A DNA stretch of 49,967 nt from Macrostomum lignano (Eukaryota), in the NCBI GenBank assembly GCA_002269645.1, contig NIVC01003199.1, positions 1-49,967 on the forward strand, given 5' to 3'. Each line of letters begins with the position of its first letter. The stretch's first letter is position 1. Below, piece after piece: positions 1,736-24,000 of the stretch. The position numbers and the translations under genes are program-made. The notes below the pieces were generated by a model that worked only from the letters and a program-made list of their open reading frames with translations, ran no database searches and was not told the DNA's origin.

Positions 1736-4637
1736 ATGGCCGAGGGCTTGTTCGAAAGCTTTGACGAAATCGAGTGCCACTCCAAGTGGCTGCCCGAGCT
1801 CAATTGCGACAGCCAAGAAGTTGACAAAATCCTCGAGGAGCTCCATTGGCAAAGCGACAATTATCCTTGGCTGAAAGGTTTATGCTTGCTCGCCATCGCG
1901 CACCTGCACACTCTGCCAGGGTCATGTGACATCGAAAAGGCACGAGAGAAACTCGAATCGATTAAGCCGTGTGAAGCAGTTTCAGGTGATCTGCCACAGC
2001 CGGATGTTAAATTTCTAGTTAAAGCAATGGAATGGAGTCACAACCAAGTCTGCCATCCAAATACAAAGACCGGCTGGAGGAATTGTCAACCTGTGGAAAG
2101 ATAAGTCAGTTCAGGCCACTTGCTTTGTTGCCAAAGGCTGGACAATGCACTGGTTTGCTGTCGGCAATAATCGAGAGGATTCTTTCCAAATTTGTGCTTC
2201 GTCTTTGTTAAAAGCGAAATCAATTATTGAAGGCGTAACTGGTGAAACTGAGAAGCTTAAAGTGGTTGAATTTATCTGCCTGCACAGTTTGGCGTTCGCC
2301 TTCTTCCGGAGACGAGAAAATCACCATCGACTGTGCAATGATGAGTTTGTCTGCTGGGACAATGCGTACAAAATTTTGACAGACAAAGAGTGGCGGCATC
2401 CAATTTTCTTGCTGGAGTTCGCTAGGGCAGTCTCTTGTTCACCTGGTCACGTAGAGTTGTGCAAAAAACTGTTAGCGGAAGAGAAAAAAAATCGAGAACA
2501 ACAGGAGAAGTATTATCAAACGTACATAATTTTGCCGGATATATTTTCGTGGCTGAAGAAGACACGAAAAAATGATAGCTTTTTGATCGAACTTGAAGTA
2601 GATATCAGCAGTTTGCTTGAAGAAGGAAGAAAAATCGAAAAACTACAACAACATAAAAAATTTTTGCGTCGAATAGTTGAGTTTCTAATCAGCTGCTCAA
2701 GACGAGAAGACGCCAGAGAGCTGTTGCAGAACACAAAGGAGGAGTGGAACACAGAGCTCTATAGGCCATCCAGCAAATACTGGTTCGAAACAACGCTGAT
2801 CGCTTTAGAAATACCCAAAACAGCCAAGGGATGCCAGAAGCTACAGCCTAAAGAGATCGAATCCTTCCTATACCGACTAGAAAACCTGTGCACAAACGTT
2901 CCGTCAAAAGCAAGGCAAGTTCGACTGACAAAAGGCATTTTTTTAATAAAGTGCGGCTACATCGATGAAGGCATGAAGTGCTTAGCGTGGGCCATGAATG
3001 ACTACCTGCATCCAGCACAAAGCTTCAAGCAGTTTTGGCCAAAAGAAATTAAAGAAGCTAAAACTGTTTTAGAAGAAACAACGGACAAAAAAAAGTACCT
3101 GAATTGGGTTGAAAGTCAATTCGAAACTCATTCGGCATTTTATCACGTCGATGACTCGATACAAAAGTACCAGACTGAGCTGAATAGGCAGGATTTAACA
3201 GAAGATGAGACATTTTTCATTACCGAGCACCTCGGAAGGCTGCTGTTGAGGAAGTACAGGTTTGAAGAGGCGGAGCAAAAGTTCAGGTCTCTGCCTGAGG
3301 CTCTGGAGCACAAAAACGCAGTGATTGCTGACTCCCTCTTGTGCCAGGCGGAAAGTTTGTCCAGCGGTGATGACGTCACAGAAGTTTGCAAGACTAAGTT
3401 TAAAGCAGAGCCAGATAATGCAGTCCACACAACCAGCATCGGGATGCGGCTGTACCTGCTGAACGAGTGTGCAAAGCTGGGCTGCAGAGACGCCATTCAT
3501 GAGGCGCTGCTTCTGCTGGAGGACATCCGGAAGCAGAGTGGCAGAGGTCACTTGTTACAGCAAGCTCCAGACAGTGACAGCGGTCACTTGTTGCAGCAAG
3601 CTCCAAACCATTTGTTCCTGCACAGCAGTCGCGTCTACGTGTTTTGCTCCCGGCTGCTTCGGCTGAGAGAGCGGGGCTTCCAAATTGAGCGAAGAAAAAG
3701 CTTTTTGGACTCTGGCGGTGACCAGATGGGTGACATGCTGGACAAAGTAGAGCAAATCTTGGCCACTGAGTTGTATCCAAGAAGAATTCGACTGAAAATG
3801 ACACAGCTGAGCTTGAAGTATGAATCAGTAGAGGACATGCTTCAGAGTCCCGAGGCTGAGCGCAGCATTTGGCACACGCTGGAGGAGTCCCGAAAAGCAC
3901 TCGATAGCTTCTGGGCTCAATTCGTCTCTAAAGTGGAGAAGCAGAAAGGTTTCTCCCAGTCTAAAGCGATATATTATCCATATTATCCATTTGCCCGCCG
4001 TGATTTGAAAAGCAGCCCTGAAAGTTTTTTAGACCTTTTCAAAAAAAATTGGAGAGATCAAGCAAAACTGTTTACTTCACTTTTGGAAACCATGAAAAGC
4101 ACTATTGAATGCCTCGGCAAGGCTAAGGAGAAGGTACACGAACTTAATGAATGCTTGAAGAATCTGGAAAATATTGACAAAGTTAGGTTAAAAGAAGAAG
4201 TGTCAGGTGATCAGCTAAACGATTTCAAACAGCAGCTGGGGAAGCTCAAGAAATTTTTCGACCCTGCTACCACTGACGCAATTAATTCAAAGCAAGCAGA
4301 CTCAATTGACAAGCTTACAAAGTCCAGTAAGAAATTTTACGAAATGCTACAGAAACCATTCCCACTCGCGTTTCGAGCGAATGACGAAGTCTGTAAATGG
4401 ATGATCCGGAAGGAAAAAGACATTGATTCCAAACAAGGTTGTTGGCATGTACACTGGTGCAACGAAGTCAACTCCGATAAGCACATTTATCCGGTTGATG
4501 TTGCCAAATTCAACGAAAAAATCAAAGAAAGATTTACTGGTAATCAGAAGCAGAGTGGGCCAATAGATGTTCTGGCTTTGGCTCATTGCGCTGCGGAATT
4601 CGCTGAAGAGGCCAGGCTCGTTCTCGAAGAGTACACG
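1736..4637 (+). CDS. Large exon: alpha-helical/TPR-like protein region with C-terminal HEPN-like domain
   Basis: ORFs 1688-2104 and 2145-4652 overlap in two frames (second frame is open from 2019). TPR-like helices include FITEHLGRLLLRKYRFEEAEQKF and LTKGIFLIKCGYIDEGMKCLAWAM. C-terminal motifs are EESRKALD, YYPF, LQKPF and NSDKH. Confidence 0.7.
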
Positions 4638-6977
4638 GTAAGTTTTTCTTAATTCTATGTTTTAAGAATCAAAGTATCTGTTTTTTGATTAGACATTGTA
4701 AAATGGAGATCACCAAACAAAGATGATTCAAATGCTGTTTTTAAGCTCTTTTCGATAGTGTAGCAGGTGTAATTTTACTTATTTGTTCGATCTCGCAATT
4801 TCCACTAAATACCACCAAGTTGTAGCAGATTTATTTGTTCTGCCTAATTGAATCACTCCGTTTGTCAACAAGTTACCAACGTATGACTCTTTTCTAGGAA
4901 ATTTCCTGGTTCACTAGATTTCTTTGGTAAGACACTGGTCTAAATTGCTAAATTAAGTCCAAAATTACAGCGTTTCCGGGGACCAAGGGTGTCCAGCGGC
5001 GAGCCTTAATACCTAATATTTGTCTGTCTTCTAATGCCTAATAATTAACATCTAATCTTATGACCTTCTTAATACCCCTTGAGGCTGTACGGCTTTATCT
5101 CTACTGGGTCTGTTCGACCTCTATTGCCTGTGCGGCCTTTTTCCTACTTCTGGGTCTGTACGACCTTTATTGCCTGTACGGTCGTTTCCCTACTTCTGGG
5201 ATAAGAAATGAATAAGCAAAGATCATCTGTCAGCAGAAATTTCCTTTATCAAAAGAGGCAAGCTAGGAACAAACTGGAGCTTGCTCAAGTTAGCTAGTTT
5301 TATTTTCATGCCAGGCGAAGCCTTTTTATAGTAAACAAAGGGGTGTGGGGTGCATCGTAATTGGCGGGGACAACTTAAAACAAAATTAGATGAAAATTTT
5401 ATCAGAAATAGGATTTACAACAAATAATACCGTATTAAAACAAAAAATTTATTTTTGGTTGCTAAATTAGCAACCATTGCGATTTTTGGTCGCATGTAGC
5501 TACTTATAGTAATGAAATGGGGATTGGCAGACCCCACTTTAATAGCGAAAGGTAGACGTGTGAAATACTTTGCTAAGCTATGATATCAGCATAAATTTAA
5601 ATTCACCTAGAAGCTCGGCTGGAAATAAAAAATACGGATTCTATTCAACTTTTTCTATTCTCAAACACTGTTTTCAAGCTCTTATAGATTAATTTGAGAA
5701 CCGAAAGTAGTGGGTTAAAATTTGCATACATTTAATTTACCGACTGATTTATAAGACTCGGTTTACAATCAATCTACCCTTGTATCATAAAACTAAATTC
5801 GGTTTGCAGTACCCGGAGGTAACCATTCCAACGAAGCCAGACGCCATCGGTGAAAACTTCGAGTGGAGCCTTGTCTGCTACTCGTGTGCTCAGCCGAACG
5901 ACGTATTGCGCAGCAGATGGAGCCGCTTGCAGAATGAATGTGCCAACTGTGACAAGTGCATTCTGCTGGTCAGAGAGAAGGCCAGTACGGAACCAAGTGA
6001 CGTTTGGCAGCGGGTCCGACCCAGACCAAGGAAACTCGTCAAGCTGGACATGTGCAGGAGATACAGCGATATAGAATCCTGCAACGGTTGCAATCGTTCT
6101 GAATGCGACTTTGCCCATGGAGACGCGGAGCTGCGGCTGTGGGAGCTGGAGAGAATCGGCAAGTTCTCCTTCAACAAGCTGCTGAAGTCCAATCGATCAG
6201 CTGGGTCAGAACTGCCGCTGATTCTCTGCGAGCGGCCTGCGGTCGAAGGAGGCTCGGAGACCCGAATTTTCTACACGGGTCCGGAGCCGCTTCCCGCCAG
6301 ACTCCCTGTGAAACAACAAAGATTCTACTATCCGCTCTGCGAATCGCTTTTTGATGGAACTGAGTGTCAACATTATAATCGAGGCAAATGCTTCAGTGCA
6401 CACTGTGCTGAGGAGGAGCAGCTGTGGAACATCATGCAACAGAAAAGAGGTAAAACCAAGAAGCTTCATCTACATGTAAATGTACGAGTATATGGGATGA
6501 AGTTCAAGTGTGTTAAGTATAATATTACAATGACAAAGTTAACGCTCGTATTGCAATTCATTAACCTGTTTAGATAGTTGGCCCGAACATCTGGCTTCAA
6601 GAATAGATAAAATCGAGCCCGAACTCATTGGCTGGAGCCTCGAATCGAGCTGCGACTACAAGCTGACCTGCTACAGGTGCTCCGAATCACTGGATCCTCT
6701 GAGAAGCAGATTCAAGCTGAAGGAAACACAGAACTGTGAGCGGTGCGACCAGAGCATCCTGCTGGTCAGATCGAAGAACAATCAAATCAACAAGTGGCAA
6801 CGCATCCGAGACAGACAAGGACATCTGGTCATATGTGATCTCTACCAATCAAACAAATGCAGGCGCTCCGAATGTGACTTCGCTCATGGCGATGTGGAAC
6901 TGAAGCTGTGGAAGCTGGAGAGAATCGGCAAGTTCTCTTTCAACAAGCTGCTGAAGTCCAATCGATCAGCTATGTAA
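1736..6977 (+). CDS. Putative spliced gene: helical/TPR-like region + HEPN-like domain + tandem ZC3H7/RoXaN-type CCCH zinc-finger modules (exons 1736-4637, 5810-6449, 6574-6977; one frameshift at ~2019-2104)
   Basis: Donor ACG|GTAAGT at 4638 (phase 0) matches acceptor TTTGCAG|TAC at 5810 (phase 0). Donor AGAG|GTAAAA at 6450 (phase 1) matches TTTAG|AT at 6574 with an open frame. The start (ATG 1736) is uncertain. Confidence 0.6.
5085..5200 (+). repeat. 46-bp tandem repeat, ~2.5 copies (intronic)
   Basis: TGGGTCTGT at 5105 and 5151; TGCCTG at 5125 and 5171. Confidence 0.75.
5810..6449 (+). CDS. Exon encoding a ZC3H7/RoXaN/HELZ2-N-type zinc-binding module plus a second degenerate CCCH finger
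   Basis: LVCYSC...CANCDKCILLV...WQRVRPRP...DMC...C...CDFAHGDAELRLWELER, then LCESLFDGTECQHYNRGKCFSAHCAEEEQLW. Canonical AG/GT boundaries. Confidence 0.8.
6574..6977 (+). CDS. Exon encoding a second copy of the ZC3H7-type CCCH module
   Basis: Hand translation: (D)SWPEHLASRIDKIEPELIGWSLESSCDYKLTCYRCSESLDPLRSRFKLKETQNCERCDQSILLVRSKNNQINKWQRIRDRQGHLVICDLYQSNKCRRSECDFAHGDVELKLWKLERIGKFSFNKLLKSNRSAM*. Missed by the ORF track. A possible donor AT|GTAAG at 6974 overlaps the stop. Confidence 0.8.
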
Positions 6978-10088: not shown

Positions 10089-11054
10089 TACTAATGCTAG
10101 TGTTATCTAGCACTTGTCAAGTCTTGCTCTCGGCTCTTACAACTACTAATAGTAATAGTAAAATAGCTAAAAAAGTAAAACCCCAGACTCAAGAGTCAAT
10201 ATTAGACTCCGTTTTCGTTTTTTTGCGGCTGCGCAAATAGCGTTGCGACACAGGTAGGCAGACGGGCAGGCATATCGAGATGGGGGATTGGGCTGGTGCT
10301 TTGTCAAGCGTTAACGGCATTATCGATATATTTTGTAATTTATAATTAATATGCATACATAAAAATCTTGCGGATAGTGTAGTAGACATGAAATAGTTAT
10401 GATAGTAATAACAACAGTAGCATAAAATTATGCCAATCATAATCGGCTAAGCAACACTTATTAAGCCTGTCAGTTATTAATGCTTATATAAAGGCTAAAG
10501 CTAGGGGAGAGCTTAAAGGATATTGCATAGTTATGGGCTAAATAACTTGTAATAACTGCCATAAACTGGCTCGACTTTCGGACCTCCCGAAAAAAACAGT
10601 TCTTAAATGTTGAGAGAAAAACGCAGACTGTAAACCAGCGACTAGAAAAATAAAAGCAAAAAGATTTCAACTGTTTTTGTGCTGTAATTAAACTTAAAAA
10701 ATTAAATACGAAAATTCAAGTACAGACTGTGCAACGCTTACTACTTACTTATTATTATAGCGGAGGTAATTACGAATATTATTGCACTACAAATATAGAT
10801 TAGTATAAAAGGGCTGGGCAGCTGGTAAAAAGGTTGCTTAACAAACCAAAATGTTATCATGGAGAAGCGATGTATTAATAAATTGCACTTTATAACCGGG
10901 GTCGAGAAGCCAAAAGCCAATGAATAAATTTCTAAATTTACGAGTTGTATACCACTGGACAACAGCTGCTTAATAATGCACGAAAAATGGGTTTATTAAT
11001 AAATTGAACAAGTACAGGTTGTTTACTTTAATTGCGCCAGGCTAGTTAAATAAA

Positions 11055-11430
11055 TTTCTGTAGTCTATGTATGGCCAGGCCTAAGTGGGGAATATATACA
11101 TTTCTGTAGTCTTTGGCCAGGCCCAAGTGGGAAATAAATACATTTCTGTAGTCTATGGCCAGGCCGAAGCGGGGAATAAATACATTTCTGTAGTCTTTGG
11201 CCAGGCCTAAGTGGGGAATAAATACGTTTCTGTAGTCTATGGCCAGGCCGAAGTGGGAAATAAATACATTTCTGTAGTCTATGGCCAGACCCAAGTGGGG
11301 AATAAATACATTTCTGTAGTCTATGGCCAGGCCCAAGTGGGGAATAAATAAATTTCTGTAGTCTATGGCCAGGCCGAAGTGGGGAATAAATACATTTCTG
11401 TAGTCTATGGCCAGGCCCAAGTGGGGAATA
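11055..11430 (+). repeat. 42-bp minisatellite, ~9 copies
   Basis: Unit TTTCTGTAGTCTATGGCCAGGCCCAAGTGGGGAATAAATACA; produces spurious 14-aa periodic ORFs. Confidence 0.95.
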
Positions 11431-12037
11431 AATATAAATATAATTCTCCACATTCTAGTAGACTAGTTTTGTAAGCTACTAAAAAAGCTATAATTGCATA
11501 TTAAATAGTAAATTTTTGTTTAACTTAACGGTTCAAACAGTTGATAATAAAGATTATATAAATTGATTATAGCATATTAGAATGGCTGACGAACTTATAG
11601 ACTGTGATGACTGACTAGCCATAGGAAAAAGTAACGCAAAACGGCTAGATTTTTTGTTTTCAAAAACTAAGAAAAAAGCAAATGGTTTATGAGACAGCTG
11701 TGATTTAATTAAAAACGCACACACAGCAATAAATTTATGATGCACACACATGGTAACTAAGCAAGCTGCAGAGGAACACAACAAAAGACACAAAAAGCAA
11801 ACGAAAAGCAAGGCATAATTACAATACGCAGTTCAATTGTTATTATATATATATTAGTAAACAGTTCTTATAAAACAAAGATGTTGTAGTAACTTCAATC
11901 AACTCCCATATTGCAACAATTTCAATCACAGGGCAATATTATTATTATTATTATTCTTAAAGGGATTAATTTTGATATAATAACAAACACTAAGCTTGAA
12001 ACGATGGAAGTGCAAGATACGAGCTGTTCCCAGTCAC

Positions 12038-15000
12038 TCAAATATCGCTCTCGTGATGCTTATTGCCCTTCTTCCTATTGTCTATGGTTGACATGCTGAA
12101 ATCGTTCACATTGTCGTCAAGAATTTTGTCCTCCTTGCTGAAGCCCGTCTGCTGGTAGATGATGTCATTTAGTAGCTGAAATGAAAAACAATGCGACAAT
12201 AAAACCAAGGTCAGTTTCTTCAGTTGTGACACTTGCGGATGAAGAAAATAGAAATGATTTTTTTGTTCTGTAGAGTCTATGGCCAGAACTCTCCTTTCTA
12301 GCTTTGATCTGCTGTCTATGGCCAGAACTCTCCTTTCTAGCTTTGATCTGCTGTCTATGGCCAGAACTCTCCTTTCTAGCTCTGATCTGCTGTCTATGGC
12401 CAGAACTCTCCTTTCTAGCTTTGATCTGCTGTCTATGGCCAGAAATCTCCTTTCTAGCTTTGATCTGCTGTCTATGGCCATAACTTTTATTTCTAGCTTT
12501 GATATGCTGTCTATGGCCAGAACTTTCATTTCCAGCTTTGATATGCTGTCTATGGCCAGAACTTTCATTTCCAGCTTTGATCTGCTGTCTATGGCCAGAA
12601 CTTTCATTTCTAGCTTTGATATGCTGTCTATGGCCAGAACTTTCATTTCTAGCTTTGATCTGCTGTCTATGGCCAGAACTTTCATTTTCAGCTTCGATAT
12701 GCTGTCTATGGCCAGAACTTTCATTTCTAGCTTTGATATGCTGTCTATGGCCATAACTTTTATTTCTAGCTTTGATCTGCTGTCTATGGCCAGAACTTTC
12801 ATTTCTAGCTTTGATCTGCTGTCTATGGCCAAAACAGACAGACATTTAATCTTAGAATTTGATAGCAATAAATATGCTCAATAGATAGAAGCTGACGAGG
12901 CTGTTAAAAATGGCTATAAAGCGAGTGACCAATCAAATCTAGATCATAAAAAGCTATTAATACTACTTACATCGTCATCTTCGCCCTCCTCGGATACGAT
13001 TAGATTGCGTCTAGCGGCAGCTTTCGACTCGGTCTTGCGCACTGATGGCATTGGAGCTCCATTTAGCTGGTGGAGGTTGTCGATTTGGTGGCATTGATTA
13101 AATAAGCTTGGATCTATTAATAGTAGCACTTTCTATATATCAGTGTCTTTCGATCCATCTCACCCCTGTATCTCAGAGTCTAATCTCACCCCCTGTATCT
13201 TAGAGTCTATATCTCACCCATGTATCTCAGAGTCTATATCTCACCCATGTATCTCAGAGTCTATATCTCACCCCTGTATCTCAGAGTCTATATCTCACCC
13301 CTGTATCTCAGTCTATATCTCTCCCCCTGTATCTCAGAGTCTATATCTCACCCCTGTATCTCAGAGTCTATATCTCGCCCCTGTATCTCAGAGTCTATAT
13401 CTCACCCCTGTATCTCAGAGTCTATATCTCTCCCCCTGTATCTCAGAGTCTATATCTCGCCCCTGTATCTCAGAGTCTATATCTCACCCCTGTATCTCAG
13501 AGTCTATATCTCACTCCCTGTATCCCACAGTTTTTATCTCACCCCTGTATCTCAAAGTCTATATCTAACCCTGAGTCTCCCTGTAACTCAGGGGTCTCCC
13601 TGTATCTCAGGGGTCTCCCTGTATCTCAGGGGTCTCCCTGTATCTCAGGGGTCTCCCTGTATCTCAGGGGTCTCCCTGTATCTCAGGGGTCTCCCTGTAT
13701 CATTCCCCCCTCAACCCCCATGGCCCAGTCCTGTATCGCTCACAGATTTCTCTCGCCGCTCAGTCCCGGCAGCGCCAGCGGGCTCAATCTCATCAGTTGG
13801 ATGCTCATCATAGCATGGCGGTCCGTGCGATCCGTGAGTCTCCACCACTTTGCTAGTGACAACCTGGCGCACCTGTTTCCGTTTGACAATTCGTTTAGTG
13901 ACCTTGTTGCCATGCTCATCCGTGTAGGTTTCCACCTCTTCGACTGGGTCGCCGACTTGTTCGCTCTGTTAAATACAAATTCAGAAAGATGAAAGTCTGT
14001 GACTACTAGCAGTAGGGAAAATGCTAAATATGTTTAAAAAAAAACGGAAAAGCTACTAACATTAATCAAATGATAGAACAGAACTACAGATCGACATATA
14101 GGTACAAAATTAATATAAACATGCTATACGAATACTTACATATAAATAATAAAAGAAAATATAAACAGAGCCATGCACAAAAAACTGCAAAAACGCAAGA
14201 AATCGCTTAAGAATCATTTTATAATCGATAAAAACGGCAGACGACCACACAGGAAGGTTGTAAGCCAGGGATCGGCAAACTCCGGCTCTCGGGTCCTTCG
14301 ATCAACTTCGCAATAGCAATTCAGTCAGCTTAAGGTTTGTGTCTCTTTTCGCCTCCTTCTCTTTTCTCTTTTCTTATAATATGAGATATTCGACATATCG
14401 GCACTTTGCTTAACACATCTCTGCATTACTGCATCATTTTCTCTCCTCCCTCTGTCTTTTCTCCTCTTTCCCTTCTCCCCTATCTCCTCTCTTCTCCTTC
14501 CTCTCTCCCGTCTTTTCTCTTTTCCTTCTGTCTTCTCTCCTCTCTCCCTTTTTCTCCCCTTTCCTCTCTCCCCTCTTCTCTCCTCCCCCTGTCTTCTCTC
14601 CTCTCTTCTTTTTCCTCTCTCCCTTCTCCTCTCCTCCCCCCTGTCTTCTCTCCTCTCTTCTTTTTCCTCTCTCCCTTCTCCTCTCCTCCCCCTGTCTTCT
14701 CTCCTCTCTTCTTTTTCCTCTCTCCCTTCTCCTCTCCTCCCCCTGTCTTCTCTCCTCTCTCCCTTTTTCTCCCCTTTCCTCTCTCCCCTCTTCTCTCCTC
14801 CCCCTGTCTTCTCTCCTCTCTTCTTTTTCCTCTCTCCCTTCTCCTCTCCTCCCCCCTGTCTTCTCTCCTCTCTTCTTTTTCCTCTCTCCCTTCTCCTCTC
14901 CTCTCCCTGTCTTCTCTCCTCTCTTCTTTTTCCTCTCTCCCTTCTCCTCTCCTCCCCCCTGTCTTCTCTCCTCTCTTCTTTTTCCTCTCTCCCCTCTCCT

Positions 15001-18000
15001 CTCCTCCCCCCTGTCTTCTCTCCTCTCTTCTTTTTCCTCTCTCCCCTCTCCTCTCCTCCCCCCTGTCTTCTCTCCTCTCTTCTTTTTCCTCTCTCCCCTC
15101 TCCTCTCCTCCCCCCTGTCTTCTCTCCTCTCTTCTTTTTCCTCTCTCCCCTCTCCTCCCCTCCCCCCTGTCTTCTCTCCTCTCTTCTTTTTCCTCTCTCC
15201 CCTCTCCTCTCCTCCCCCCTGTCTTCTCTCCTCTCTTCTTTTTCCTCTCTCCCCTCTCCTCTCCTCCCCCTGTCTTCTCTCCTCTCTTCTTTTTCCTCTC
15301 TCCCTTCTCCTCTCCTCCCCCTGTCTTCTCTCCTCTCTTCTTTTTCCTCTCTCCCCTCTCCTCTCCTCCCCCTGTCTTCTCTCCTCTCTTCTTTTTCCTC
15401 TCTCCCCTCTCCTCTCCTCCCCCTGTCTTCTCTCCTCTCTTCTTTTTCCTCTCTCTCCATTCCTCTCCTCCCCCTGTCTTCTCTCCTCTCTTCTTTTTCC
15501 TCTCTCCCCTCTCCTCTCCTCCCCCTGTCTTCTCTCCTCTCTTCTTTTTCCTCTCTCCCCTCTCCTCTCCCCCCTGTCTTCTCTCCTCTCTTCTTTTTCC
15601 TCTCTCCCCTCTCCTCTCCTCCCCCTGTCTTCTCTCCTCTCTTCTTTTTCCTCTCTCCCCTCTCCTCTCCTCCCCCTGTCTTCTCTCCTCTCTTCTTTTT
15701 CCTCTCTCCCCTCTCCTTTCGCTTCTCCCTCCCCTATTATCTCCTCACATCCTCCATCTTTTCTCTCATCCTACCTGCGTATCGCTTCTGCCCACCCCTC
15801 TCTCCTCTTATCTACTATTCCCTCTCCTTATCAGTCTAATCTGGCCCGCGGCCATGAGCTGGATTCTTTACTATCTAGCCATTGGCTTAAGGTAAAAAAG
15901 TTTGCAGACCCACTTGCTATAAACAATGATACGTGCATCAAGCAAGGTAAACTACAGGAGGGTAATAGAGGTACAATTAGTAGGCTAGGAAGCTAATAAA
16001 CCGGCTCTAATCCAGATACGCAAGCAGCTAGCAAAGGATTACTTGAGTGACAAAGGTTCGCTCTTTCGGATCGCCCTGGAAATGATGATGATGCTTCGGA
16101 TAGCCCTGATGCTCGCAGCCTCCTCCGTCGCCTGCGGCACCGGCCTCGGCCATCTCCATCATGGCCATGGACTTGGAGATATTGTCATCGGAGTAGTCCG
16201 CAGGCTTTTATTGGAAAAAAATAAGTACGCATTGAACTTTTCAAGTGATAAAATTTTATTAGGGGACATTTGAAGGTCACGGATACAAACAAGACAATGT
16301 ACTGTTGATCAGACAGTCGCTATAAACTCTCTCACCTCCGTTCGGTGCTCGTGAACGGCAGTTCCACCACCGCCGCCATTGTAGCCGCCGTGCAATTGGC
16401 CGGCGTGAATCTGCTGCTTGTTCTCACGGATGACGTCATATTTGTGATCAACAGACGGCAGGTTGGAGTTCTGCGTTGCGTGATTGGTTGAGATTATTTT
16501 AGAGACAAGTGAAGCGAAGAATTTCAACAATTATATATTGCAGTTACAGCTTATCACCACCCAGCTTACCCTCTTTGTGAGGCTTTCCTGAAGCATTCTA
16601 GGATCAACGTAGGTAAATCCTTTGGACTTGCGCTGCAATGCAATTTGTGACGGGTGATGATTAGGGATCTGTGTAGATTGCTTAGGGATCTGTGCAGATT
16701 GCTTAGGGATCTGTGTAGATTGCTTAGGGATCTGTGTAGATTGCTTAGGGATCTGTGTAGATTGCTTAGGGATCTGTGTAGATTGCTTAGGGATCTGTGC
16801 AGATTGCTTAGGGATCTGAGTAGATTGCTTAGGGATCTGTGTAGATTGCTTAGGGATCTGTGTAGATTGCTTAGGGATCTGTGTAGATTGCTTTGGGATC
16901 TGTGTAGATTGCTTAGGGATCTGTGTAGATTGCTAAGGGATCTGAGTAGATTGCTTAGGGATCTGTGTAGATTGCTTAGGGATCTGTGTAGATTGCTTTG
17001 GGATCTGTGTAGATTGCTTTGGGATCTGTGTAGATTTCTTAGTGATCTGTGTAGGGGACCACTAAAAAGGGATCTGTGGGGATCACTAATAAGGGATCTG
17101 TGGGGATCACTAAAAAGGGATCTGTGGGGATCACTAACAAGGGATCTGTGGGGATCACTAAAAAGGGATCTGTGGGGATCACTAAAAAGGGATCTGTGGG
17201 GATCACTAACAAGGGATCTGTGGGGATCACTAATAAGGGATCTGTGGGGACCACAAAAAAGGGATCTGTGGGGATCACTAAAAAGGGATCTGTGGGGATC
17301 ACTAATAAGGGATCTGTGGGGACCACAAAAAAGGGATCTGTGGGGATCACTAATAAGGGATCTGTGGGGATCACTAAAAAGGGATCTGTGGGGACCACTA
17401 AAAAGGGATCTGTGGGGATCACTAAAAAGGGATCTGTGGGGATCACTAATAAGGGATCTGTGGGGATCACTAATAAGGGATCTGTGGGGATCACTAACAA
17501 GGGATCTGTGGGGATCACTAATAAGGGATCTGTGGGGACCACTAACAAGGGATCTGTGGGGACCACTAAAAAGGGATCTGTGGGGATCTTAAAAGATCTG
17601 ATGGGGATTTTTATGATCCCAACCAGTTTTTTAGGATTGACTTCAATTTTGAAGGGATTTTTGGGAACTATTATAGATAGGAATAATTTCAAGATTTAGG
17701 GCTAAGTTTAAAGAATGATACACAATAGAAATCAGCACTCACGTCCATAACTCCGGTCTTTCCGCTTCGCCGTACGGAATCCTCGCTAGCCAGACACACT
17801 GGAGTCCACTCGTCGCCAGGAGGATATTTGAAGGGCGTCTGGCCGAGATTGACAAACAGAGTCTGGTCCCGCATGCTCACTGTGGGATAGAATGCCTCCT
17901 GGCTGAGCACTTGGCTGGGCAGCTGGTAGGCGGGGCCCATCAGGGCGCTGTTGCGAGCGAACTGCATCTGGCCGTGGTCCAGATCTAAGAAGCAGCCAAC

Positions 18001-21000
18001 AACGTCGCCTTTGCCAAACGGTTCGCCATAGCTGTCAATCTCGTCTGAGTGCATCTTTTTGCCTTGATTGCCGGCCAGCCCGAAGCCGTCGGGATCGGCG
18101 CCGTAGCCCCAGCCGGCGGCGTCTCGGCCGATGTCCAGGCCGCCCGACTCGGTGGTCCAGCCGGCTCTGGACAGGCCGCGGGCCTCCTGCGGCTCCACCT
18201 CGTAGTAGAACCGGCCGCCAGCCCGACCGCGGAGACCTTTGTTGGCGCGGACGCCCTGGTTGGTGTTGACGGTTGGATGACTGATTTATGCTTGATTGAT
18301 GACTGGTTGATGACGATTGACAAGAGGTTGATGATGGTTGATGATGGCTGATGATGATTGATGATGATTGTTGATGGTCAATGATGATTGATGATAGCTA
18401 ATGGTGTTTGGTGATGATTGATGACGGTTGATAATAGATTTACAGTGAGAGCTGATAGATAACTGATTGCTAGTTGACTATAGATGCCGGCTGATGCAAA
18501 TGCACAACAGTTGCAACTCCCGCGCCCACCTGCCAGCCGAAGCCCAGCTGACTCTGCGCAGAGGCACCGTCGGGTCCCAGCGTCAGTCCGGGGCCGCTGG
18601 TGTCGTGCTGATTCAGCCGCCAGGCGCGCGGATTCTCGGCCTGTTGATTGGCCGGCGCCAAACCGACGGGCCGCCAGACGCCGGCCGGCCGGTACAGCAG
18701 CGGCCTGGCCGGATCGTCGCCGAAGTTCCAGTGGGCGGCGGCGCCGGGGGCGAGGCAGGCGGCCGGGTAGAACACCTCACGGCGCATGTCGTGCGGCAAT
18801 TCGTAGGCGAGGCCCAACTCTTTGCCATTGACTGAGTACAGCACAGAGCCGCCGTCTAAGTCGACGAAAACTCCGACAACGTCGCCGCTGGCTAGACGAT
18901 CGCCGTAGGCCTCGGCGACGCCGCGGTTGTACTTTTCGCCGTTGGCCCCGTAGCCGAAACCGTGGGCGTCGTCGCCTAGGCGCAGACTGGCGGAGCTGGT
19001 CGACCAGCCAACTCTGGCTGGCACAGGCTGATCGCCGGCAGGTGTTGCCATGGTAACCGTGGCTTCGTAGTACCACTGGCCGCCGTTGCAAACTCCGCGA
19101 TCGGTACGGCAGCCCTGGGATAGGAATGCGTCATTGTTGATAAATGCAGTTTTTAATACCATTGACTCTATCAAATTAAAGTACACGTGTGACTAAAGTA
19201 CAAATGTGCCAGTTCTAGAGTACAGATGTATTAGTTTAAAAGTTTTTTATTACAGGGTCGCCACACACACCCTCAATTACCCTAGCTAAAACCTGATACC
19301 CATTTTGCAGCTGGGTGAACTGAAGCAATGCAGAGTTACGAGTAAGTGTCTTGCTTAAGGACACGAGTTGTTCCAAGTAGGTTGATAATCGAATCCCCGA
19401 CTTTTCAGTGGTAAGCCCGACACTAAACTACTAGGCTGAAATCCCTCAAAACACACACTAGTACACATGTACTAGTTCAAAAAGTACACATGTACTAGTT
19501 CAAAAAGTACACATGCACTAGTTCAAAAAGTACACATGTACTAGTTCAAAAAGTACACATGCACTAATTCAAAAAGTACACATGTACTTGTTCAAAAAGT
19601 ACACATGTACTAGTTCAAAAAGTACACATGTACTAGTTCAAAAAGTACACATGTACTAGTTCAAAAAGTACACATGTACTAGCTCAAAAAGCACATTTAA
19701 ATAGTGAACACAGCAGAGCTTATAGCTGATGGAAAATTAAAGCAGCTCACCTGCCAATCAGGCGCCCCGACGGGACAGGCGCCAACTGATCGGCCAGAGT
19801 CCAGACTGGCTGACAGCATTGGCTCAGCGTCGGCCGGAGACATGTGCCAACGGGACGGCCGTTCAACCACCAGCTCAGGTCGACGGTCCATCTGATCGCG
19901 TTGCTGCTGCTGCTGCATTTGCATCTGTTGCTGGCGCCACAAGGTGACGTCGCTAATAGTGCCGTCCCCGGCGCCGCCGTAGATGTTGCCGCGAGATCCG
20001 TTGGCAGCGGCGGCTCGCAGCTCGCGATTGTAGGCGTCCTCTGAGGAATTTGAATTCAATGTTACAAGGATTTGCAATTTGGAATGAAATTGAAGCCTGC
20101 AGCATTGAGACTTAATTTTGAAGGATTTTATACCTGAGAAGGGTTTTGGATTAGGGATTTGGGGAGGATTATGGATAAGAAAATTATGGAGTTGAATAGG
20201 ATTAGGGACTTGAGGAGGATTAGGGATTTGAGAACTAGGGATTTTAAAAGGATTGGGGATTTAAAGACTACGGATTTAAATAGGATTAGGGATTTGAGGA
20301 AGATTAGGGATTTGAGGACGACTAGGGATTTGAATAGGATTAAGGATTTGAGGAGGAGGATTAGGGATTTAAAGACTACGGATTTGAATAGGATTAGGGA
20401 TCTGGGGAGGACTAGGGATTTAAAAAGGATTACGGATTCGAAGATAATTAGAGATTTGAAGTCAACTACAGAATTATACTGAAGTATAAGGACAGTCAGA
20501 GAAATTGAGATTCAATACCAAGGATTTTGAATTTGAAGGATTTTGGATTTGAAGGGGCTCAGGGTTCGGGATTCTTAACTGGGATTCGAATTGCATAATA
20601 TTTGAATCACACCTTTCTGTCTGAAGCTCTTGCGCATATCGCTAGTAACGGGCATCTCCTGATAGTTGCCGTAGGTCTGATCGTTGAGCTGGTCGCGAGT
20701 CGGCCCAGTGTAATTCCATTTGTTCTTGAATGTGCCAGGAATCAGCGGCTTGGACGGCTTCTCCGGCGATTTGAGTCTGCGCGGGTTGAGCCATAGTAAC
20801 GGATTAGGCGAGCTTTAGATTGTGCAGAGATGAATACGGTAGGGAATTAACAATGACTATAGGGAGAGGCCGATGGGACGGCTCAGAGGGAAATAACAGC
20901 TTGGATAATCCAGGCATTAATCCAGTAGATATTATTGATTATCTAAGGGTTAATCCAGTAGGGATTATCGATAAAGGATTATTGATTATTGAAGAATTAA

Positions 21001-24000
21001 CCAGTAGAGATTATCTATAATCCAAGATTATTGATTATCTAAGGATTAATCCGGTAGAGATTATCGATAATCCAACGATTATTGATTATCTAAGGATTAA
21101 TTCAGTAGAGATGATCTATATTTAAGGATTATTGATTATTCAATAAAGATTATTGATTATCCAGTAAAGATTACCGATAATCCAAGGATTATTGATTATT
21201 GAAGGATTAATCCAGTAGAGATTATCTATAATCCAAGGATTATTGCTAGTCTAAGGATTAATCCAGTAAAGATTATTGATAATCCGGAAGCGAACGTCAA
21301 TAATCCAAGGATTAACTAAGCAAGGATTAGCCATAATCCAGGGATAAGCACTTCGGGGATGAAAAAAAGTCTTGAACTTCAAGCAAAGCAAAGCGTTAAA
21401 CCAAAGCTCTCAAAGTTATTCCTCACCGGAAGAAGCCGTGATGCTCAACCACAGCCCGCCACAACCGCTTGGCCAGCTTAGCCGAGGCGCACTTGAACTC
21501 AACCACAGTCTCAGCTTTCGAGTCGCGCTCCGACTCAGTCCTGATGCCAATCTTGAGCGTATTCCGCTTATAGGACACTTTGAGAATCTTTGGCCAAGAG
21601 TAGCGACCAATCCGCAGGCTGTTGCGGTACACCAGCACGCCCGAATGATACACGCCAACAAAGACCTCCTCGCCCATGCTGTCCTTGGCCTCGTGCATGT
21701 CCAATCCGTACATAGCCAGCTTCTTGGCATTCTGCAAGAAATGCATATCGGCCTCCTCTGGCGTCATGCCCTGGTGAGTTTTGTGCAACTCGCTGACTCG
21801 TTCCATGAGTTCGCGATGACTGCGGAATTCCTCCGGACAGAATGGACAGTCCTGCAGGTACAGCAGGCTGGTCATCTTCTCGTCGCTTGGCTCGAAATCG
21901 CCGATCTCGGATTGGACAACGTAGCTGCCCAAGATGATGTAGGTGATGAAGGAGCAGGGCAAGGCGTCGGCCATGAGATTCTGGCGAATCTGGAGAGCCA
22001 TGTAGTAGCGGGTGAGATTCTCGCGGAGATTCTCCGGATCGGGCGGATAGAACTTCACCATGAAGTCCAGCTTCCATTCGTTCTCTGCGGATTTTTAGGG
22101 GGGGGGGTGGGTGTCGAGCTGCCTGTTTTGCTGCGGTTAATTAAAGTGCTCTTTGTACTCTAATTTCCCTTTTCTACATCAGAAGCGTCCAGAGTGACAG
22201 TGGCGTGACAATCACGTGACGGTATCGTGGCAATCACGTGACGGTATCGTGACAATCACGTGACAGTATCGTGGCAATCACGTGACAGTATCGTGGCAAT
22301 CACGTGACGGTATTGTGACAATCACGTGACGGTATTGTGACAATCACGTGACAGTGTCGTGACAATCACGTGACAGTGTCGTCGTAATCACGTGACAGTA
22401 TCGTGACAATTATGTGACAGTATCGTGACAATATCGTGACAATCACGTGACAGTATCGTGACAATCACGTGACAGTATTGTGACAAAAAACACGTGATGG
22501 GAGTCAGGATACAAGCTATTTTTACACAATCACTTGACAGACACAAACAACCTGGAAAATTGTATTTTATAGGAAATACGGTACTCTAAGATAACGAAAA
22601 ATATGTTGATAATGCCATAACTATTGATAGAACGGATTTCCAGGCACGCCAAGGAAACTCTCAATAGTAAATACCAAGCAACAATACTGAGATAAAAGTA
22701 CAGCGCTAGGTTCTATAGTATTAGCGGGCAGGCAGACAGACAGACAGATCCCAGACAGGGAGATCGGGGGAGAAATGTACAGAGCAGAGAAGAGGGATAG
22801 AAAAGATCAATGTGGGTTTGGTGGCTCAGCGCGCATCGCATCTGACAGTCCACTCACACTGCTCAAACTTCTTATATAAAAATGTGAGCAATAGGAAATA
22901 CTGTTAGTACGTATGCATCATAATCATTTTTTCTAAAATCTAAATCCCTAAGGGAGATTCCGCTAGGCGCAGAATTGAACCCACCTACCCGACTAAGCCT
23001 TCTACTTAAACTGTGTGTTCCCCCAAAAATGGCAGCCTTAAAAATATCCCTCTTGCATCTGGGGGAGTGAGGGAAACAGAAGGGCTGGGGGATGGGAGGG
23101 GAGACGCGTTAAGGCAGCTCTCTGACTCAGCCAGTGGTGGTTGAGCTGTGCAGAGAAACGTAGAATGCTGTCGATGATTGTGCAGGCAAACCCAATTCAT
23201 CTCCTCATCTGACTGTCCCGACAGACTCCGATAATGCCTTAAACATAGCAATAGTGATCCTCAAGTGTGACCATGATGTGACCGTCAATTTGACTTGCGA
23301 AAGATGAAAATACTGTCATTGTGACCCTTGTGTGTTATTCCAGTCACATTTGACGGTCACATTTGAGGGCCACATGAGTGACCATTTGTTTGGCGGTCAC
23401 ATTTGAGGGCCACATGAGTGACCATTTGTTTGACGGTCACATCGCAGGGTCACATGAGCGACCATTTGTTTGGCGGTCACATTTGAGGGCCACATGAGTG
23501 ACCATTTGTTTGACGGTCACATCGCAGGGTCACATGAGTGACCATTTGTTTGACGGTCACATTTGAGGGCCACATGAGTGACCATTTGTTTGACGGTCAC
23601 ATTTGAGGGCCACATGAGTGACCATTTGTTTGACGGTCACATTTGAGGGCCACATGAGTGACCATTTGTTTGACGGTCACATTTGAGGGCCACATGAGTG
23701 ACCATTTGTTTGACGGTCACATAAGCGACCGTTAATTTGACGGTTACATCCAAGCGTCACAATAAAGGGTCACATGCAATTTGCTTTGTTTTAACTGTCA
23801 TCAAAACGGTCACATAGTCAAAATGTGACCGGTCCCAGTTTTATACAGGACAGAAAGCCGAAAACAGTGAAAGCGAAAGTCGAAATGAGGTCGAATGGGA
23901 AGATGCAAAAGCCCCCCTTCCCCTAATTCCTATAGAACGCCAGACGGGCCTGTTAAGATCTCTTAACAACCCCCTCTAGTTGATGGCTACCAGAGTCGGG

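Follow-up and report, generated by a model that had tools for sequence, protein, structure and literature searches.

IFIT proteins are clamps of tetratricopeptide repeats (TPRs) that bind the 5' ends of RNA. The pentapeptide CHFTW, which lies in loop L1 between helices 1 and 2, is described as common to all of them (PMC11462223), and a genome survey reported that invertebrates lack IFITs, their origin coinciding with that of jawed vertebrates and the interferon system (PMC3688568). TPRs are also found in ZC3H7A and ZC3H7B (RoXaN), which combine a short canonical domain of three TPRs with three to four copies of a zinc-finger module of about 108 residues and with a C2H2-jaz finger. Here we analyse a gene of the flatworm Macrostomum lignano at positions 1736-6977 on the forward strand of a stretch of 49,967 nucleotides (nt) (assembly GCA_002269645.1, contig NIVC01003199.1, positions 1 to 49,967), referred to as the window in the following. 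In the reading that we consider the probable one, the gene belongs to a lineage-expanded family and encodes an IFIT-like half followed by a helical region, a conserved domain and a tail of zinc fingers predicted to bind RNA. The product is an IFIT-like protein with a new architecture and not the novel nuclease proposed in a preliminary description made from the sequence alone.

The zinc-finger part is joined in frame to the long open reading frame (ORF) upstream of it, from 4637 to 5810 in phase 0, so that splicing yields a single polypeptide, just as the preliminary description had put forward. The donor reads GAGTACACG/gtaagt with E-Y-T as the last codons of the exon, and the acceptor reads ggtttgcag/TACCCGGAG (slashes mark boundaries; coordinates of all parts are given in Table 1). 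The query-contiguous high-scoring segment pairs obtained by tblastn break exactly at 4637/5810 both for P0001 (UniRef A0A1I8J5T1, 1346 amino acids (aa), 91% identical to the window protein), where the break corresponds to residues 1006/1007, and for the paralog P0002, which is 44% identical, where it corresponds to residues 541/542. Altogether five M. lignano protein models (P0001 to P0005) continue across this junction, and the junction peptide ...LVLEEYT/YPE(V/L)TIP... is also present in P0003, P0004 and P0005. Over intron 2 the in-frame product agrees with P0003 and P0004 (...QQKRDNWPEHL...). When read from M2145 the spliced product comprises 1178 aa, the final 112 of which are 100% identical to P0001, and the closest protein matches of the gene are M. 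lignano entries with 91-97% identity. An extension of the gene beyond 6977, the end that had already been set correctly, was considered; the downstream frame contains stops and is devoid of homology.

The link to the IFITs is established by profile searches of the PDB. With profile A6, which comprises the first 220 positions of the family N-terminus, the seven best matches are all IFIT5, IFIT1 or IFIT3 (E=1e-6 for IFIT5, 1.5e-4 and 1.2e-3 for IFIT1, 0.58 for IFIT3), and nothing else appears below E=0.8. Profile positions 7-174 align with residues 13-174 of IFIT5, that is about 165 residues are collinear from the N-terminus, and the aligned blocks shared with IFITs include LAY..HL.G and KG....F. 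A profile of 562 positions covering the N-terminal ~560 residues of five members also has IFIT5 as its top PDB match (E=1.6e-5), again collinear from the N-terminus. Such a profile is required because single sequences do not reach the IFITs: PDB searches with P0010 and P0025 alone returned designed consensus TPRs or nothing, and no IFITs. Pfam TPR models match P0010.

The IFIT signature is also recognizable. Family alignments of the N-terminal part contain an invariant E-C-(H)-x-x-W-x-P, and in all members compared the CHFTW-type signature sits at residues about 12-28 of the proteins. Exact CHFTW is present in the paralogs P0010, P0057, P0062 and P0063, in P0010 and P0063 as LECHFTW at residues ~11-17, while CHFKW is found in P0025 and P0061, CPFVW in the second paralog of a tandem pair described below and CHSKW in P0001 and the window. 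In the window, E-C-H-S-K-W is encoded at 1772-1789 (CHSKW at 1775-1789), with C, H and W of the IFIT pentapeptide retained. The AlphaFold2 (AF2) model of P0001 residues 44-640 (predicted local distance difference test score (pLDDT) 75.7) consists of helical hairpins in an uninterrupted array, and in a Foldseek comparison with the PDB the top template modelling (TM) scores belong to IFIT1 (5udl) and IFIT5 (3zgq) (TMq 0.42, TMt 0.50; root-mean-square deviation 9.5-13 Å, E 3e-3 to 1e-2).

By the profile evidence the N-terminal half is best classified as an IFIT homolog and not as a generic TPR region. The TPR-like scaffold of the preliminary description is therefore retained as a helical-repeat scaffold and abandoned as a generic protein-sensing TPR, since the PDB matches of profile A6 below E=0.8 are exclusively IFITs. 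The likeness to IFIT1, IFIT5 and IFIT3 consists of the N-terminal ~170 collinear residues, the L-E-C-H-F-T-W of the paralogs and the all-helical TPR array, and it extends to the fact that the flatworm genes also form a lineage-specific, partly tandem family. On the other hand, the flatworm protein has roughly double the length ahead of its fingers, the family adds a helical region, a conserved C-terminal domain and zinc-finger or RGG tails, RNA-contact residues such as K150 of IFIT5 are not visibly conserved, and the window copy carries CHSKW. Moreover, the organism is a flatworm for which no interferon system is known.

The tail encoded downstream of intron 1 indeed consists of tandem ZC3H7-type CCCH fingers. 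In a locally iterated hidden Markov model (HMM) the module spans ~108 residues and reads CxxC...[C/H]x(1-2)C, LLV, W.R[VI]RP, C...C...C.FAH..E...W. A first full ZC3H7/HELZ2-type copy lies at 5858-6187 (CxxC...CxxC, LLVR, WQRVRP, CCCH, FAHGDAEL..W), a partial, CCCH-only copy extends from 6308 to the end of zinc-finger exon 1, and a second full copy follows at 6651-6956 in zinc-finger exon 2. The window total is thus two full and one partial module, those of exon 1 corresponding to residues 848-957 and 998-1048 in the local HMM iteration, compared with three to seven in relatives (three to four in P0015, P0024 and P0021). In alignment A7 the four CCCH ligand columns are either invariant or conserved to at least 90%. 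Searched exhaustively with HMMER, a set of 1.84 billion representative proteins yielded ZC3H7B of Nothobranchius furzeri (P0015, E=3.1e-7), a ZC3H7B-like protein of the snail Gigantopelta (P0024, E=3.3e-6), a hagfish protein with TPR, CCCH and C2H2-jaz (P0021, E=1.2e-6) and a Batillaria protein of 3172 aa with AAA_11/AAA_12 helicase, RNB and OB_HELZ2 (P0009). A PDB profile of the CCCH half matched fingers of TTP, TIS11d, Roquin and ZC3H7A (1e-8 to 5e-6), ZC3H7A 2d9m being the entry that covers most of this half. Pfam zf-CCCH did not match the window sequence.

Since ZC3H7 proteins likewise have TPRs at the N-terminus and repeat the same ~108-residue module several times (CxxC...[CH]x(1-2)C knuckle, W.R[VI]RP, CCCH, E...W), the window protein might be regarded as a divergent ZC3H7 orthologue, that is a generic TPR plus CCCH protein of microRNA or messenger RNA regulation with no specific link to IFITs. 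We consider this improbable. The TPR part of ZC3H7 proteins is a short three-repeat domain that matches Pfam TPR_1 and has no CHFTW, whereas the region before the fingers of the window protein amounts to ~960 residues and begins with an N-terminus that in profile A6 matches only IFITs in the PDB. P0015 and P0021 have both TPR_1 and zf-C2H2_jaz matches, the window protein has neither, and ZC3H7 proteins lack both the IFIT-like N-terminus and the conserved C-terminal domain. Furthermore, M. lignano possesses separate multi-module proteins, e.g. P0007. The fingers of the IFIT-like protein are instead an add-on, because most paralogs that share its core are without any zinc fingers. Four copies of the same module are also present at the N-terminus of HELZ2-like P0009, and the module is thus a recurrent RNA-targeting add-on of proteins of RNA metabolism. 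P0009 differs in that it has real catalytic domains (AAA_11/AAA_12, RNB, OB_HELZ2), while none is recognizable in the window protein.

The family core is made up of the IFIT-like half, the helical region and the conserved C-terminal domain, and M. lignano contains at least five lineages of it below 50% identity. Its tails vary: P0025 has none, P0010 and P0012 end in long RGG/GRGGS repeats, and the window protein and P0001 to P0005 carry ZC3H7-type modules. Both RGG repeats and CCCH fingers are known to bind RNA, and the attachment of one or the other to a common core supports an RNA-related role for the core. A finger tail that is attached via a phase-0 intron at the end of a domain is what would be expected as a product of exon shuffling. 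Word-indexed homolog searches returned close M. lignano proteins only, and the wider family emerged from the representative search. Assembly ERZ25074608 from ENA contains three family loci on three contigs, including a tandem pair on a 491-kb contig.

The two tandem paralogs of ERZ25074608, on contig ctg185430 (L001, 8001-18590), are both without a zinc-finger tail. Paralog 1, P0025, is intronless and comprises 869 aa. Paralog 2 has at least three exons: LECPFVW is encoded by the N-terminal one, and the main body and a C-terminal domain identical to P0032 by the others.

The middle region starts with conserved blocks that are followed by a variable, coiled-coil-like stretch. In Pfam and the PDB it (3501-4319) had no match beyond TPR-like or low-complexity helices, a profile of residues 340-835 yielded only a weak TPR-like LapB match in the PDB, and Pfam and NCBIfam searches with the window exons gave nothing significant. 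A PADLOC match to PbeC (E=2e-5) in the variable stretch at residues 620-702 was treated as compositional because it is absent from the paralogs, and a phmmer search of the PDB with the C-terminal 279 residues returned apolipoprotein A-I and similar amphipathic helices, which were rejected as low-complexity.

The C-terminal domain is conserved well beyond the close relatives. Eight residues, E (4413), W (4443), W (4455), N (4470), K (4479), H (4482), H (4584) and E (4605), are invariant in 12 of 12 members, although members outside the group of the window protein are just 24-31% identical to its domain. The domain is common to M. lignano P0010, P0012 and P0033/P0063 and to P0019, P0025, P0032 and P0037 from the ENA assembly. 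Its AF2 model, built on the 12-sequence alignment, has five helices (pLDDT 78.6).

The preliminary description had interpreted this domain as a HEPN RNase and the whole protein as an RNA-sensing nuclease guided by TPR and CCCH parts. With HEPN RNases (the KEN domain of RNase L and IRE1, Cas13, HepT) the domain shares its small, all-helical make-up, with four core helices in the AF2 model, and a conserved His with Asn at position -4. RNxxxH is the common HEPN motif, as in IRE1 and RNase L, and the N-x-x-x-H spacing agrees with the 'N...H' part of it; NSDKH at 4470-4484 is the N..KH portion of the invariant set (N776, K779, H780). Furthermore, HELZ2-like P0009 carries this zinc-finger module together with RNB, a true RNase. 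However, the defining Arg of Rx4-6H is missing throughout: the motif reads [VIH]-N-x-[DE]-K-H in all 12 members with V, I or H and never Arg at position -5, and a conserved R-x(4-6)-H is present neither in the columns of alignment A2 for the C-terminal half nor in the last 135 window residues. A Pfam search at E up to 10 gave no HEPN family for the domain, and its profile retrieved only chance matches from all PDB sequences (connexin-43, SaeR, E 0.04-0.2). Foldseek with the AF2 model found no HEPN structure in the HEPN-rich PDB, where the best match had E=6 and TM 0.30, and there was no match at all in BFVD. Even the topology differs, for in minimal HEPN domains the motif lies at the N-terminus of the last core helix, whereas in the model it lies at the C-terminal end of a helix with two further helices after it. 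The assignment as a HEPN RNase has thus failed each of these tests, and an RNA-sensing nuclease of this type is very improbable.

The C-terminal domain is nevertheless real and conserved, and to judge from its invariant residues it may bind a metal or ligand, serve for oligomerisation or be a new enzyme. A specific proposal along these lines is a new effector enzyme or metal-binding switch that is delivered to RNA by the IFIT-like and finger parts. All eight invariant residues are kept across members just 24-31% identical to the window's copy, six of them have a polar or charged side chain (E, N, K, H, H, E) and they extend over three helices; the domain is kept in every family member, whichever tail it has. 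Any similarity to a known catalytic fold is lacking in the PDB profile search, in Pfam and in Foldseek searches of PDB and BFVD, and a role in binding or oligomerisation is more usual for small helical bundles. We therefore regard such an effector as unlikely.

The copy in the window deviates from P0001 at its N-terminus. Its ATG at 1736 is the counterpart of Met44 in P0001. With P0001 as the reference, 16 nt are deleted near 2031 and 1 nt near 2087, within 55 nt, and because of both deletions the frame from 1736 stops at TAA 2102-2104 and the long ORF lies in another frame. The tblastn alignment of P0001 accordingly changes from frame 2 to 1 to 3 over 2032-2139; the long ORF is open from 2019, and homology to P0001 sets in at 2082. 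The frame starting at 1736 does not continue into the 835-aa ORF, a break that the preliminary description had overlooked. A GT..AG interval of 151 nt (1986-2136) would restore the frame if spliced and would at the same time remove family-invariant residues. The long ORF also contains a 12-codon tandem duplication at 3546-3605 (GHLLQQAPDSDS-GHLLQQAP) that is not present in P0001 or P0002.

A further observation concerns P0005 (M. lignano A0A1I8G528), which is 96% identical to the window protein over matched stretches. Its mid-finger region, equivalent to window ~6300-6800, is translated in a shifted frame, with a peptide ...ATKILLSALRTRF... that resembles the alternative-frame ORF 6103-6354 of the window. 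This suggests that frameshifted copies of this gene family, or indel errors, exist in public assemblies.

The window copy may thus give rise to an N-terminally truncated product, or it may be a decaying paralog or mis-assembled. That it is a non-functional or decaying paralog, or bears assembly indel errors, with the intact gene residing elsewhere, e.g. as that of P0001, is a possibility to be taken seriously, even if we do not favour it; it would be compatible with the IFIT-like reading at the level of the family. The two frameshifting deletions with the ensuing stop, the tandem duplication, CHSKW in place of CHFTW and the partly out-of-frame P0005, which points to pseudogenes or an indel-prone assembly, all agree with it. 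On the other hand, the reading frame from M2145 stays open for 1178 codons over three exons, the splice sites are intact, none of the eight invariant residues of the C-terminal domain and none of the zinc ligands has been lost, the last 112 residues are the same as in P0001, and splicing of 1986-2136 would restore the frame, though with loss of conserved residues.

Taking the parts together, the favoured reading is that of a probably cytoplasmic RNA-binding protein. The tail joined on after intron 1 provides two and a half modules, each a CxxC..CxxC knuckle plus a putatively RNA-binding CCCH finger. The IFIT-like clamp and the CCCH modules might jointly recognize RNA, possibly non-self RNA, in analogy to IFIT1/5 and HELZ2. 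The protein would then sequester or mark RNAs or recruit partners and would not cleave RNA by itself, the C-terminal domain possibly serving as one of the alternatives given above. The analysis demonstrates the gene structure, the IFIT homology, the nature of the finger modules and the failure of the HEPN assignment, whereas an antiviral role, binding of RNA by the clamp and any function of the C-terminal domain are inferred. The antiviral, RNA-related function guessed in the preliminary description may be right, although for another reason, because the scaffold is homologous to RNA-binding IFIT proteins.

Several points weigh against the favoured reading. The RNA-contact residues of IFITs are not visibly conserved, and the TPR part could bind protein: K150 is among the residues of the IFIT5 pocket for RNA 5' ends, and in the alignment of the 562-position profile it is matched by W, C or S in family members, the other pocket residues falling in poorly aligned stretches. 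The ligand specificity of IFITs can therefore not be assumed for the flatworm family. For IFITs the Foldseek E-values do not stand out from those of other long TPR proteins, and the AF2 models were built on shallow alignments (10-12 sequences, pLDDT 76-79). In the C-terminal domain the invariant polar residues resemble an active or metal-binding site, such that catalysis, even by a nuclease, would be possible. In addition, the transcript support is indirect, as it comes from gene models of other copies, and the N-terminal exon of the window is frameshifted and has CHSKW instead of CHFTW.

No description of IFIT homologs in flatworms, Macrostomum or other invertebrates was found in the literature. 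The architecture, which the preliminary description did not recognize from any characterized protein, is in fact uncharacterized, but it had already been predicted, in UniProt, as uncharacterized entries. An IFIT signature together with IFIT-specific profile matches in a flatworm family suggests an older origin or a much wider distribution of IFITs; a parallel case has recently been argued for Mx proteins (PMC11789081). For innate immunity and its evolution the finding is of moderate to high relevance. That the family is fused to ZC3H7/HELZ2-type fingers or RGG tails leads to the testable hypothesis that an IFIT-like fold is used for RNA recognition already in invertebrates. In a bolder version, to which we give little credence, IFIT-type clamps would predate vertebrates and interferon, and the flatworm proteins would form an expanded family of innate RNA surveillance that couples the sensor to an undescribed helical domain with invariant E, N, K, H, H and E as a new effector (e.g. 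an enzyme) and to interchangeable RNA-binding tails. The C-terminal domain, for which no relative was detected and whose invariant polar residues form a clear set, is a tractable target, and the gene can now be given an evidence-based label in place of the unsupported 'HEPN nuclease'.

Table 1. Coordinates of the IFIT-like gene and its parts in the window.
Feature	Position	Strand	Details
N-terminal coding exon, start of IFIT-like region	1736-2104	+	tblastn of P0001; family alignments
Long ORF	2145-4652	+	followed by consensus donor; coding exon ends at 4637
IFIT-like TPR region, remainder	2145-3500	+	first 452 codons of long ORF; profile and model
Family-specific helical middle region	3501-4319	+	blocks LFLHS..VY.FC, SIWHTLEESRK.LD, YYPFA; alignments A1, A2
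Conserved C-terminal helical domain (~95 residues)	4320-4637	+	12-member alignment A3; ends at GT donor 4638
Intron 1	4638-5809	+	1172 nt, gtaagt...tttgcag, phase 0; exactly between conserved C-terminal domain and finger tail
Zinc-finger exon 1	5810-6449	+	
Intron 2	6450-6573	+	124 nt, GAG/gtaaaa...ctgtttag/AT, phase 1
Zinc-finger exon 2	6574-6977	+	stop TAA 6975-6977

A short palindromic GAAA-rich motif (GCAAGAAAATCT / AGATTTTCTTGC) is clustered at 1468-1661, directly upstream of the ATG at 1736. Seven of its 17 matches in the window (at most two mismatches) fall within 1473-1635, the chance expectation being 8.5 for the whole window. In the P0001 model part of the 1468-1661 stretch is translated, as 5' leader; the motif could be a regulatory element or a small repeat.

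Downstream of the gene, satellite arrays with periods of 42, 39, 27/82, 19, 51, 21 and 24 nt occupy 11047-17588, and the long 'ORFs' in this part are repeat artefacts. An extreme GC skew of -0.72 is explained by a CT-rich array of 1.3 kb (14441-15717, 51 nt x 25). An ORF on the plus strand at 40760-41401 matches the CLCA N-terminal domain below threshold (E=2.7e-5; 24.2 bits vs a cut-off of 25.6). The minus strand contains, at 21423-22061, an exon of a FERM-domain gene in the form of an ORF with FERM_M and FERM_C (E=7e-22 and 2e-20), and at 17689-19186 two ORFs, each with Pfam SPRY (E=2e-15 and 2e-20), that probably belong as exons to a single gene encoding two SPRY domains.

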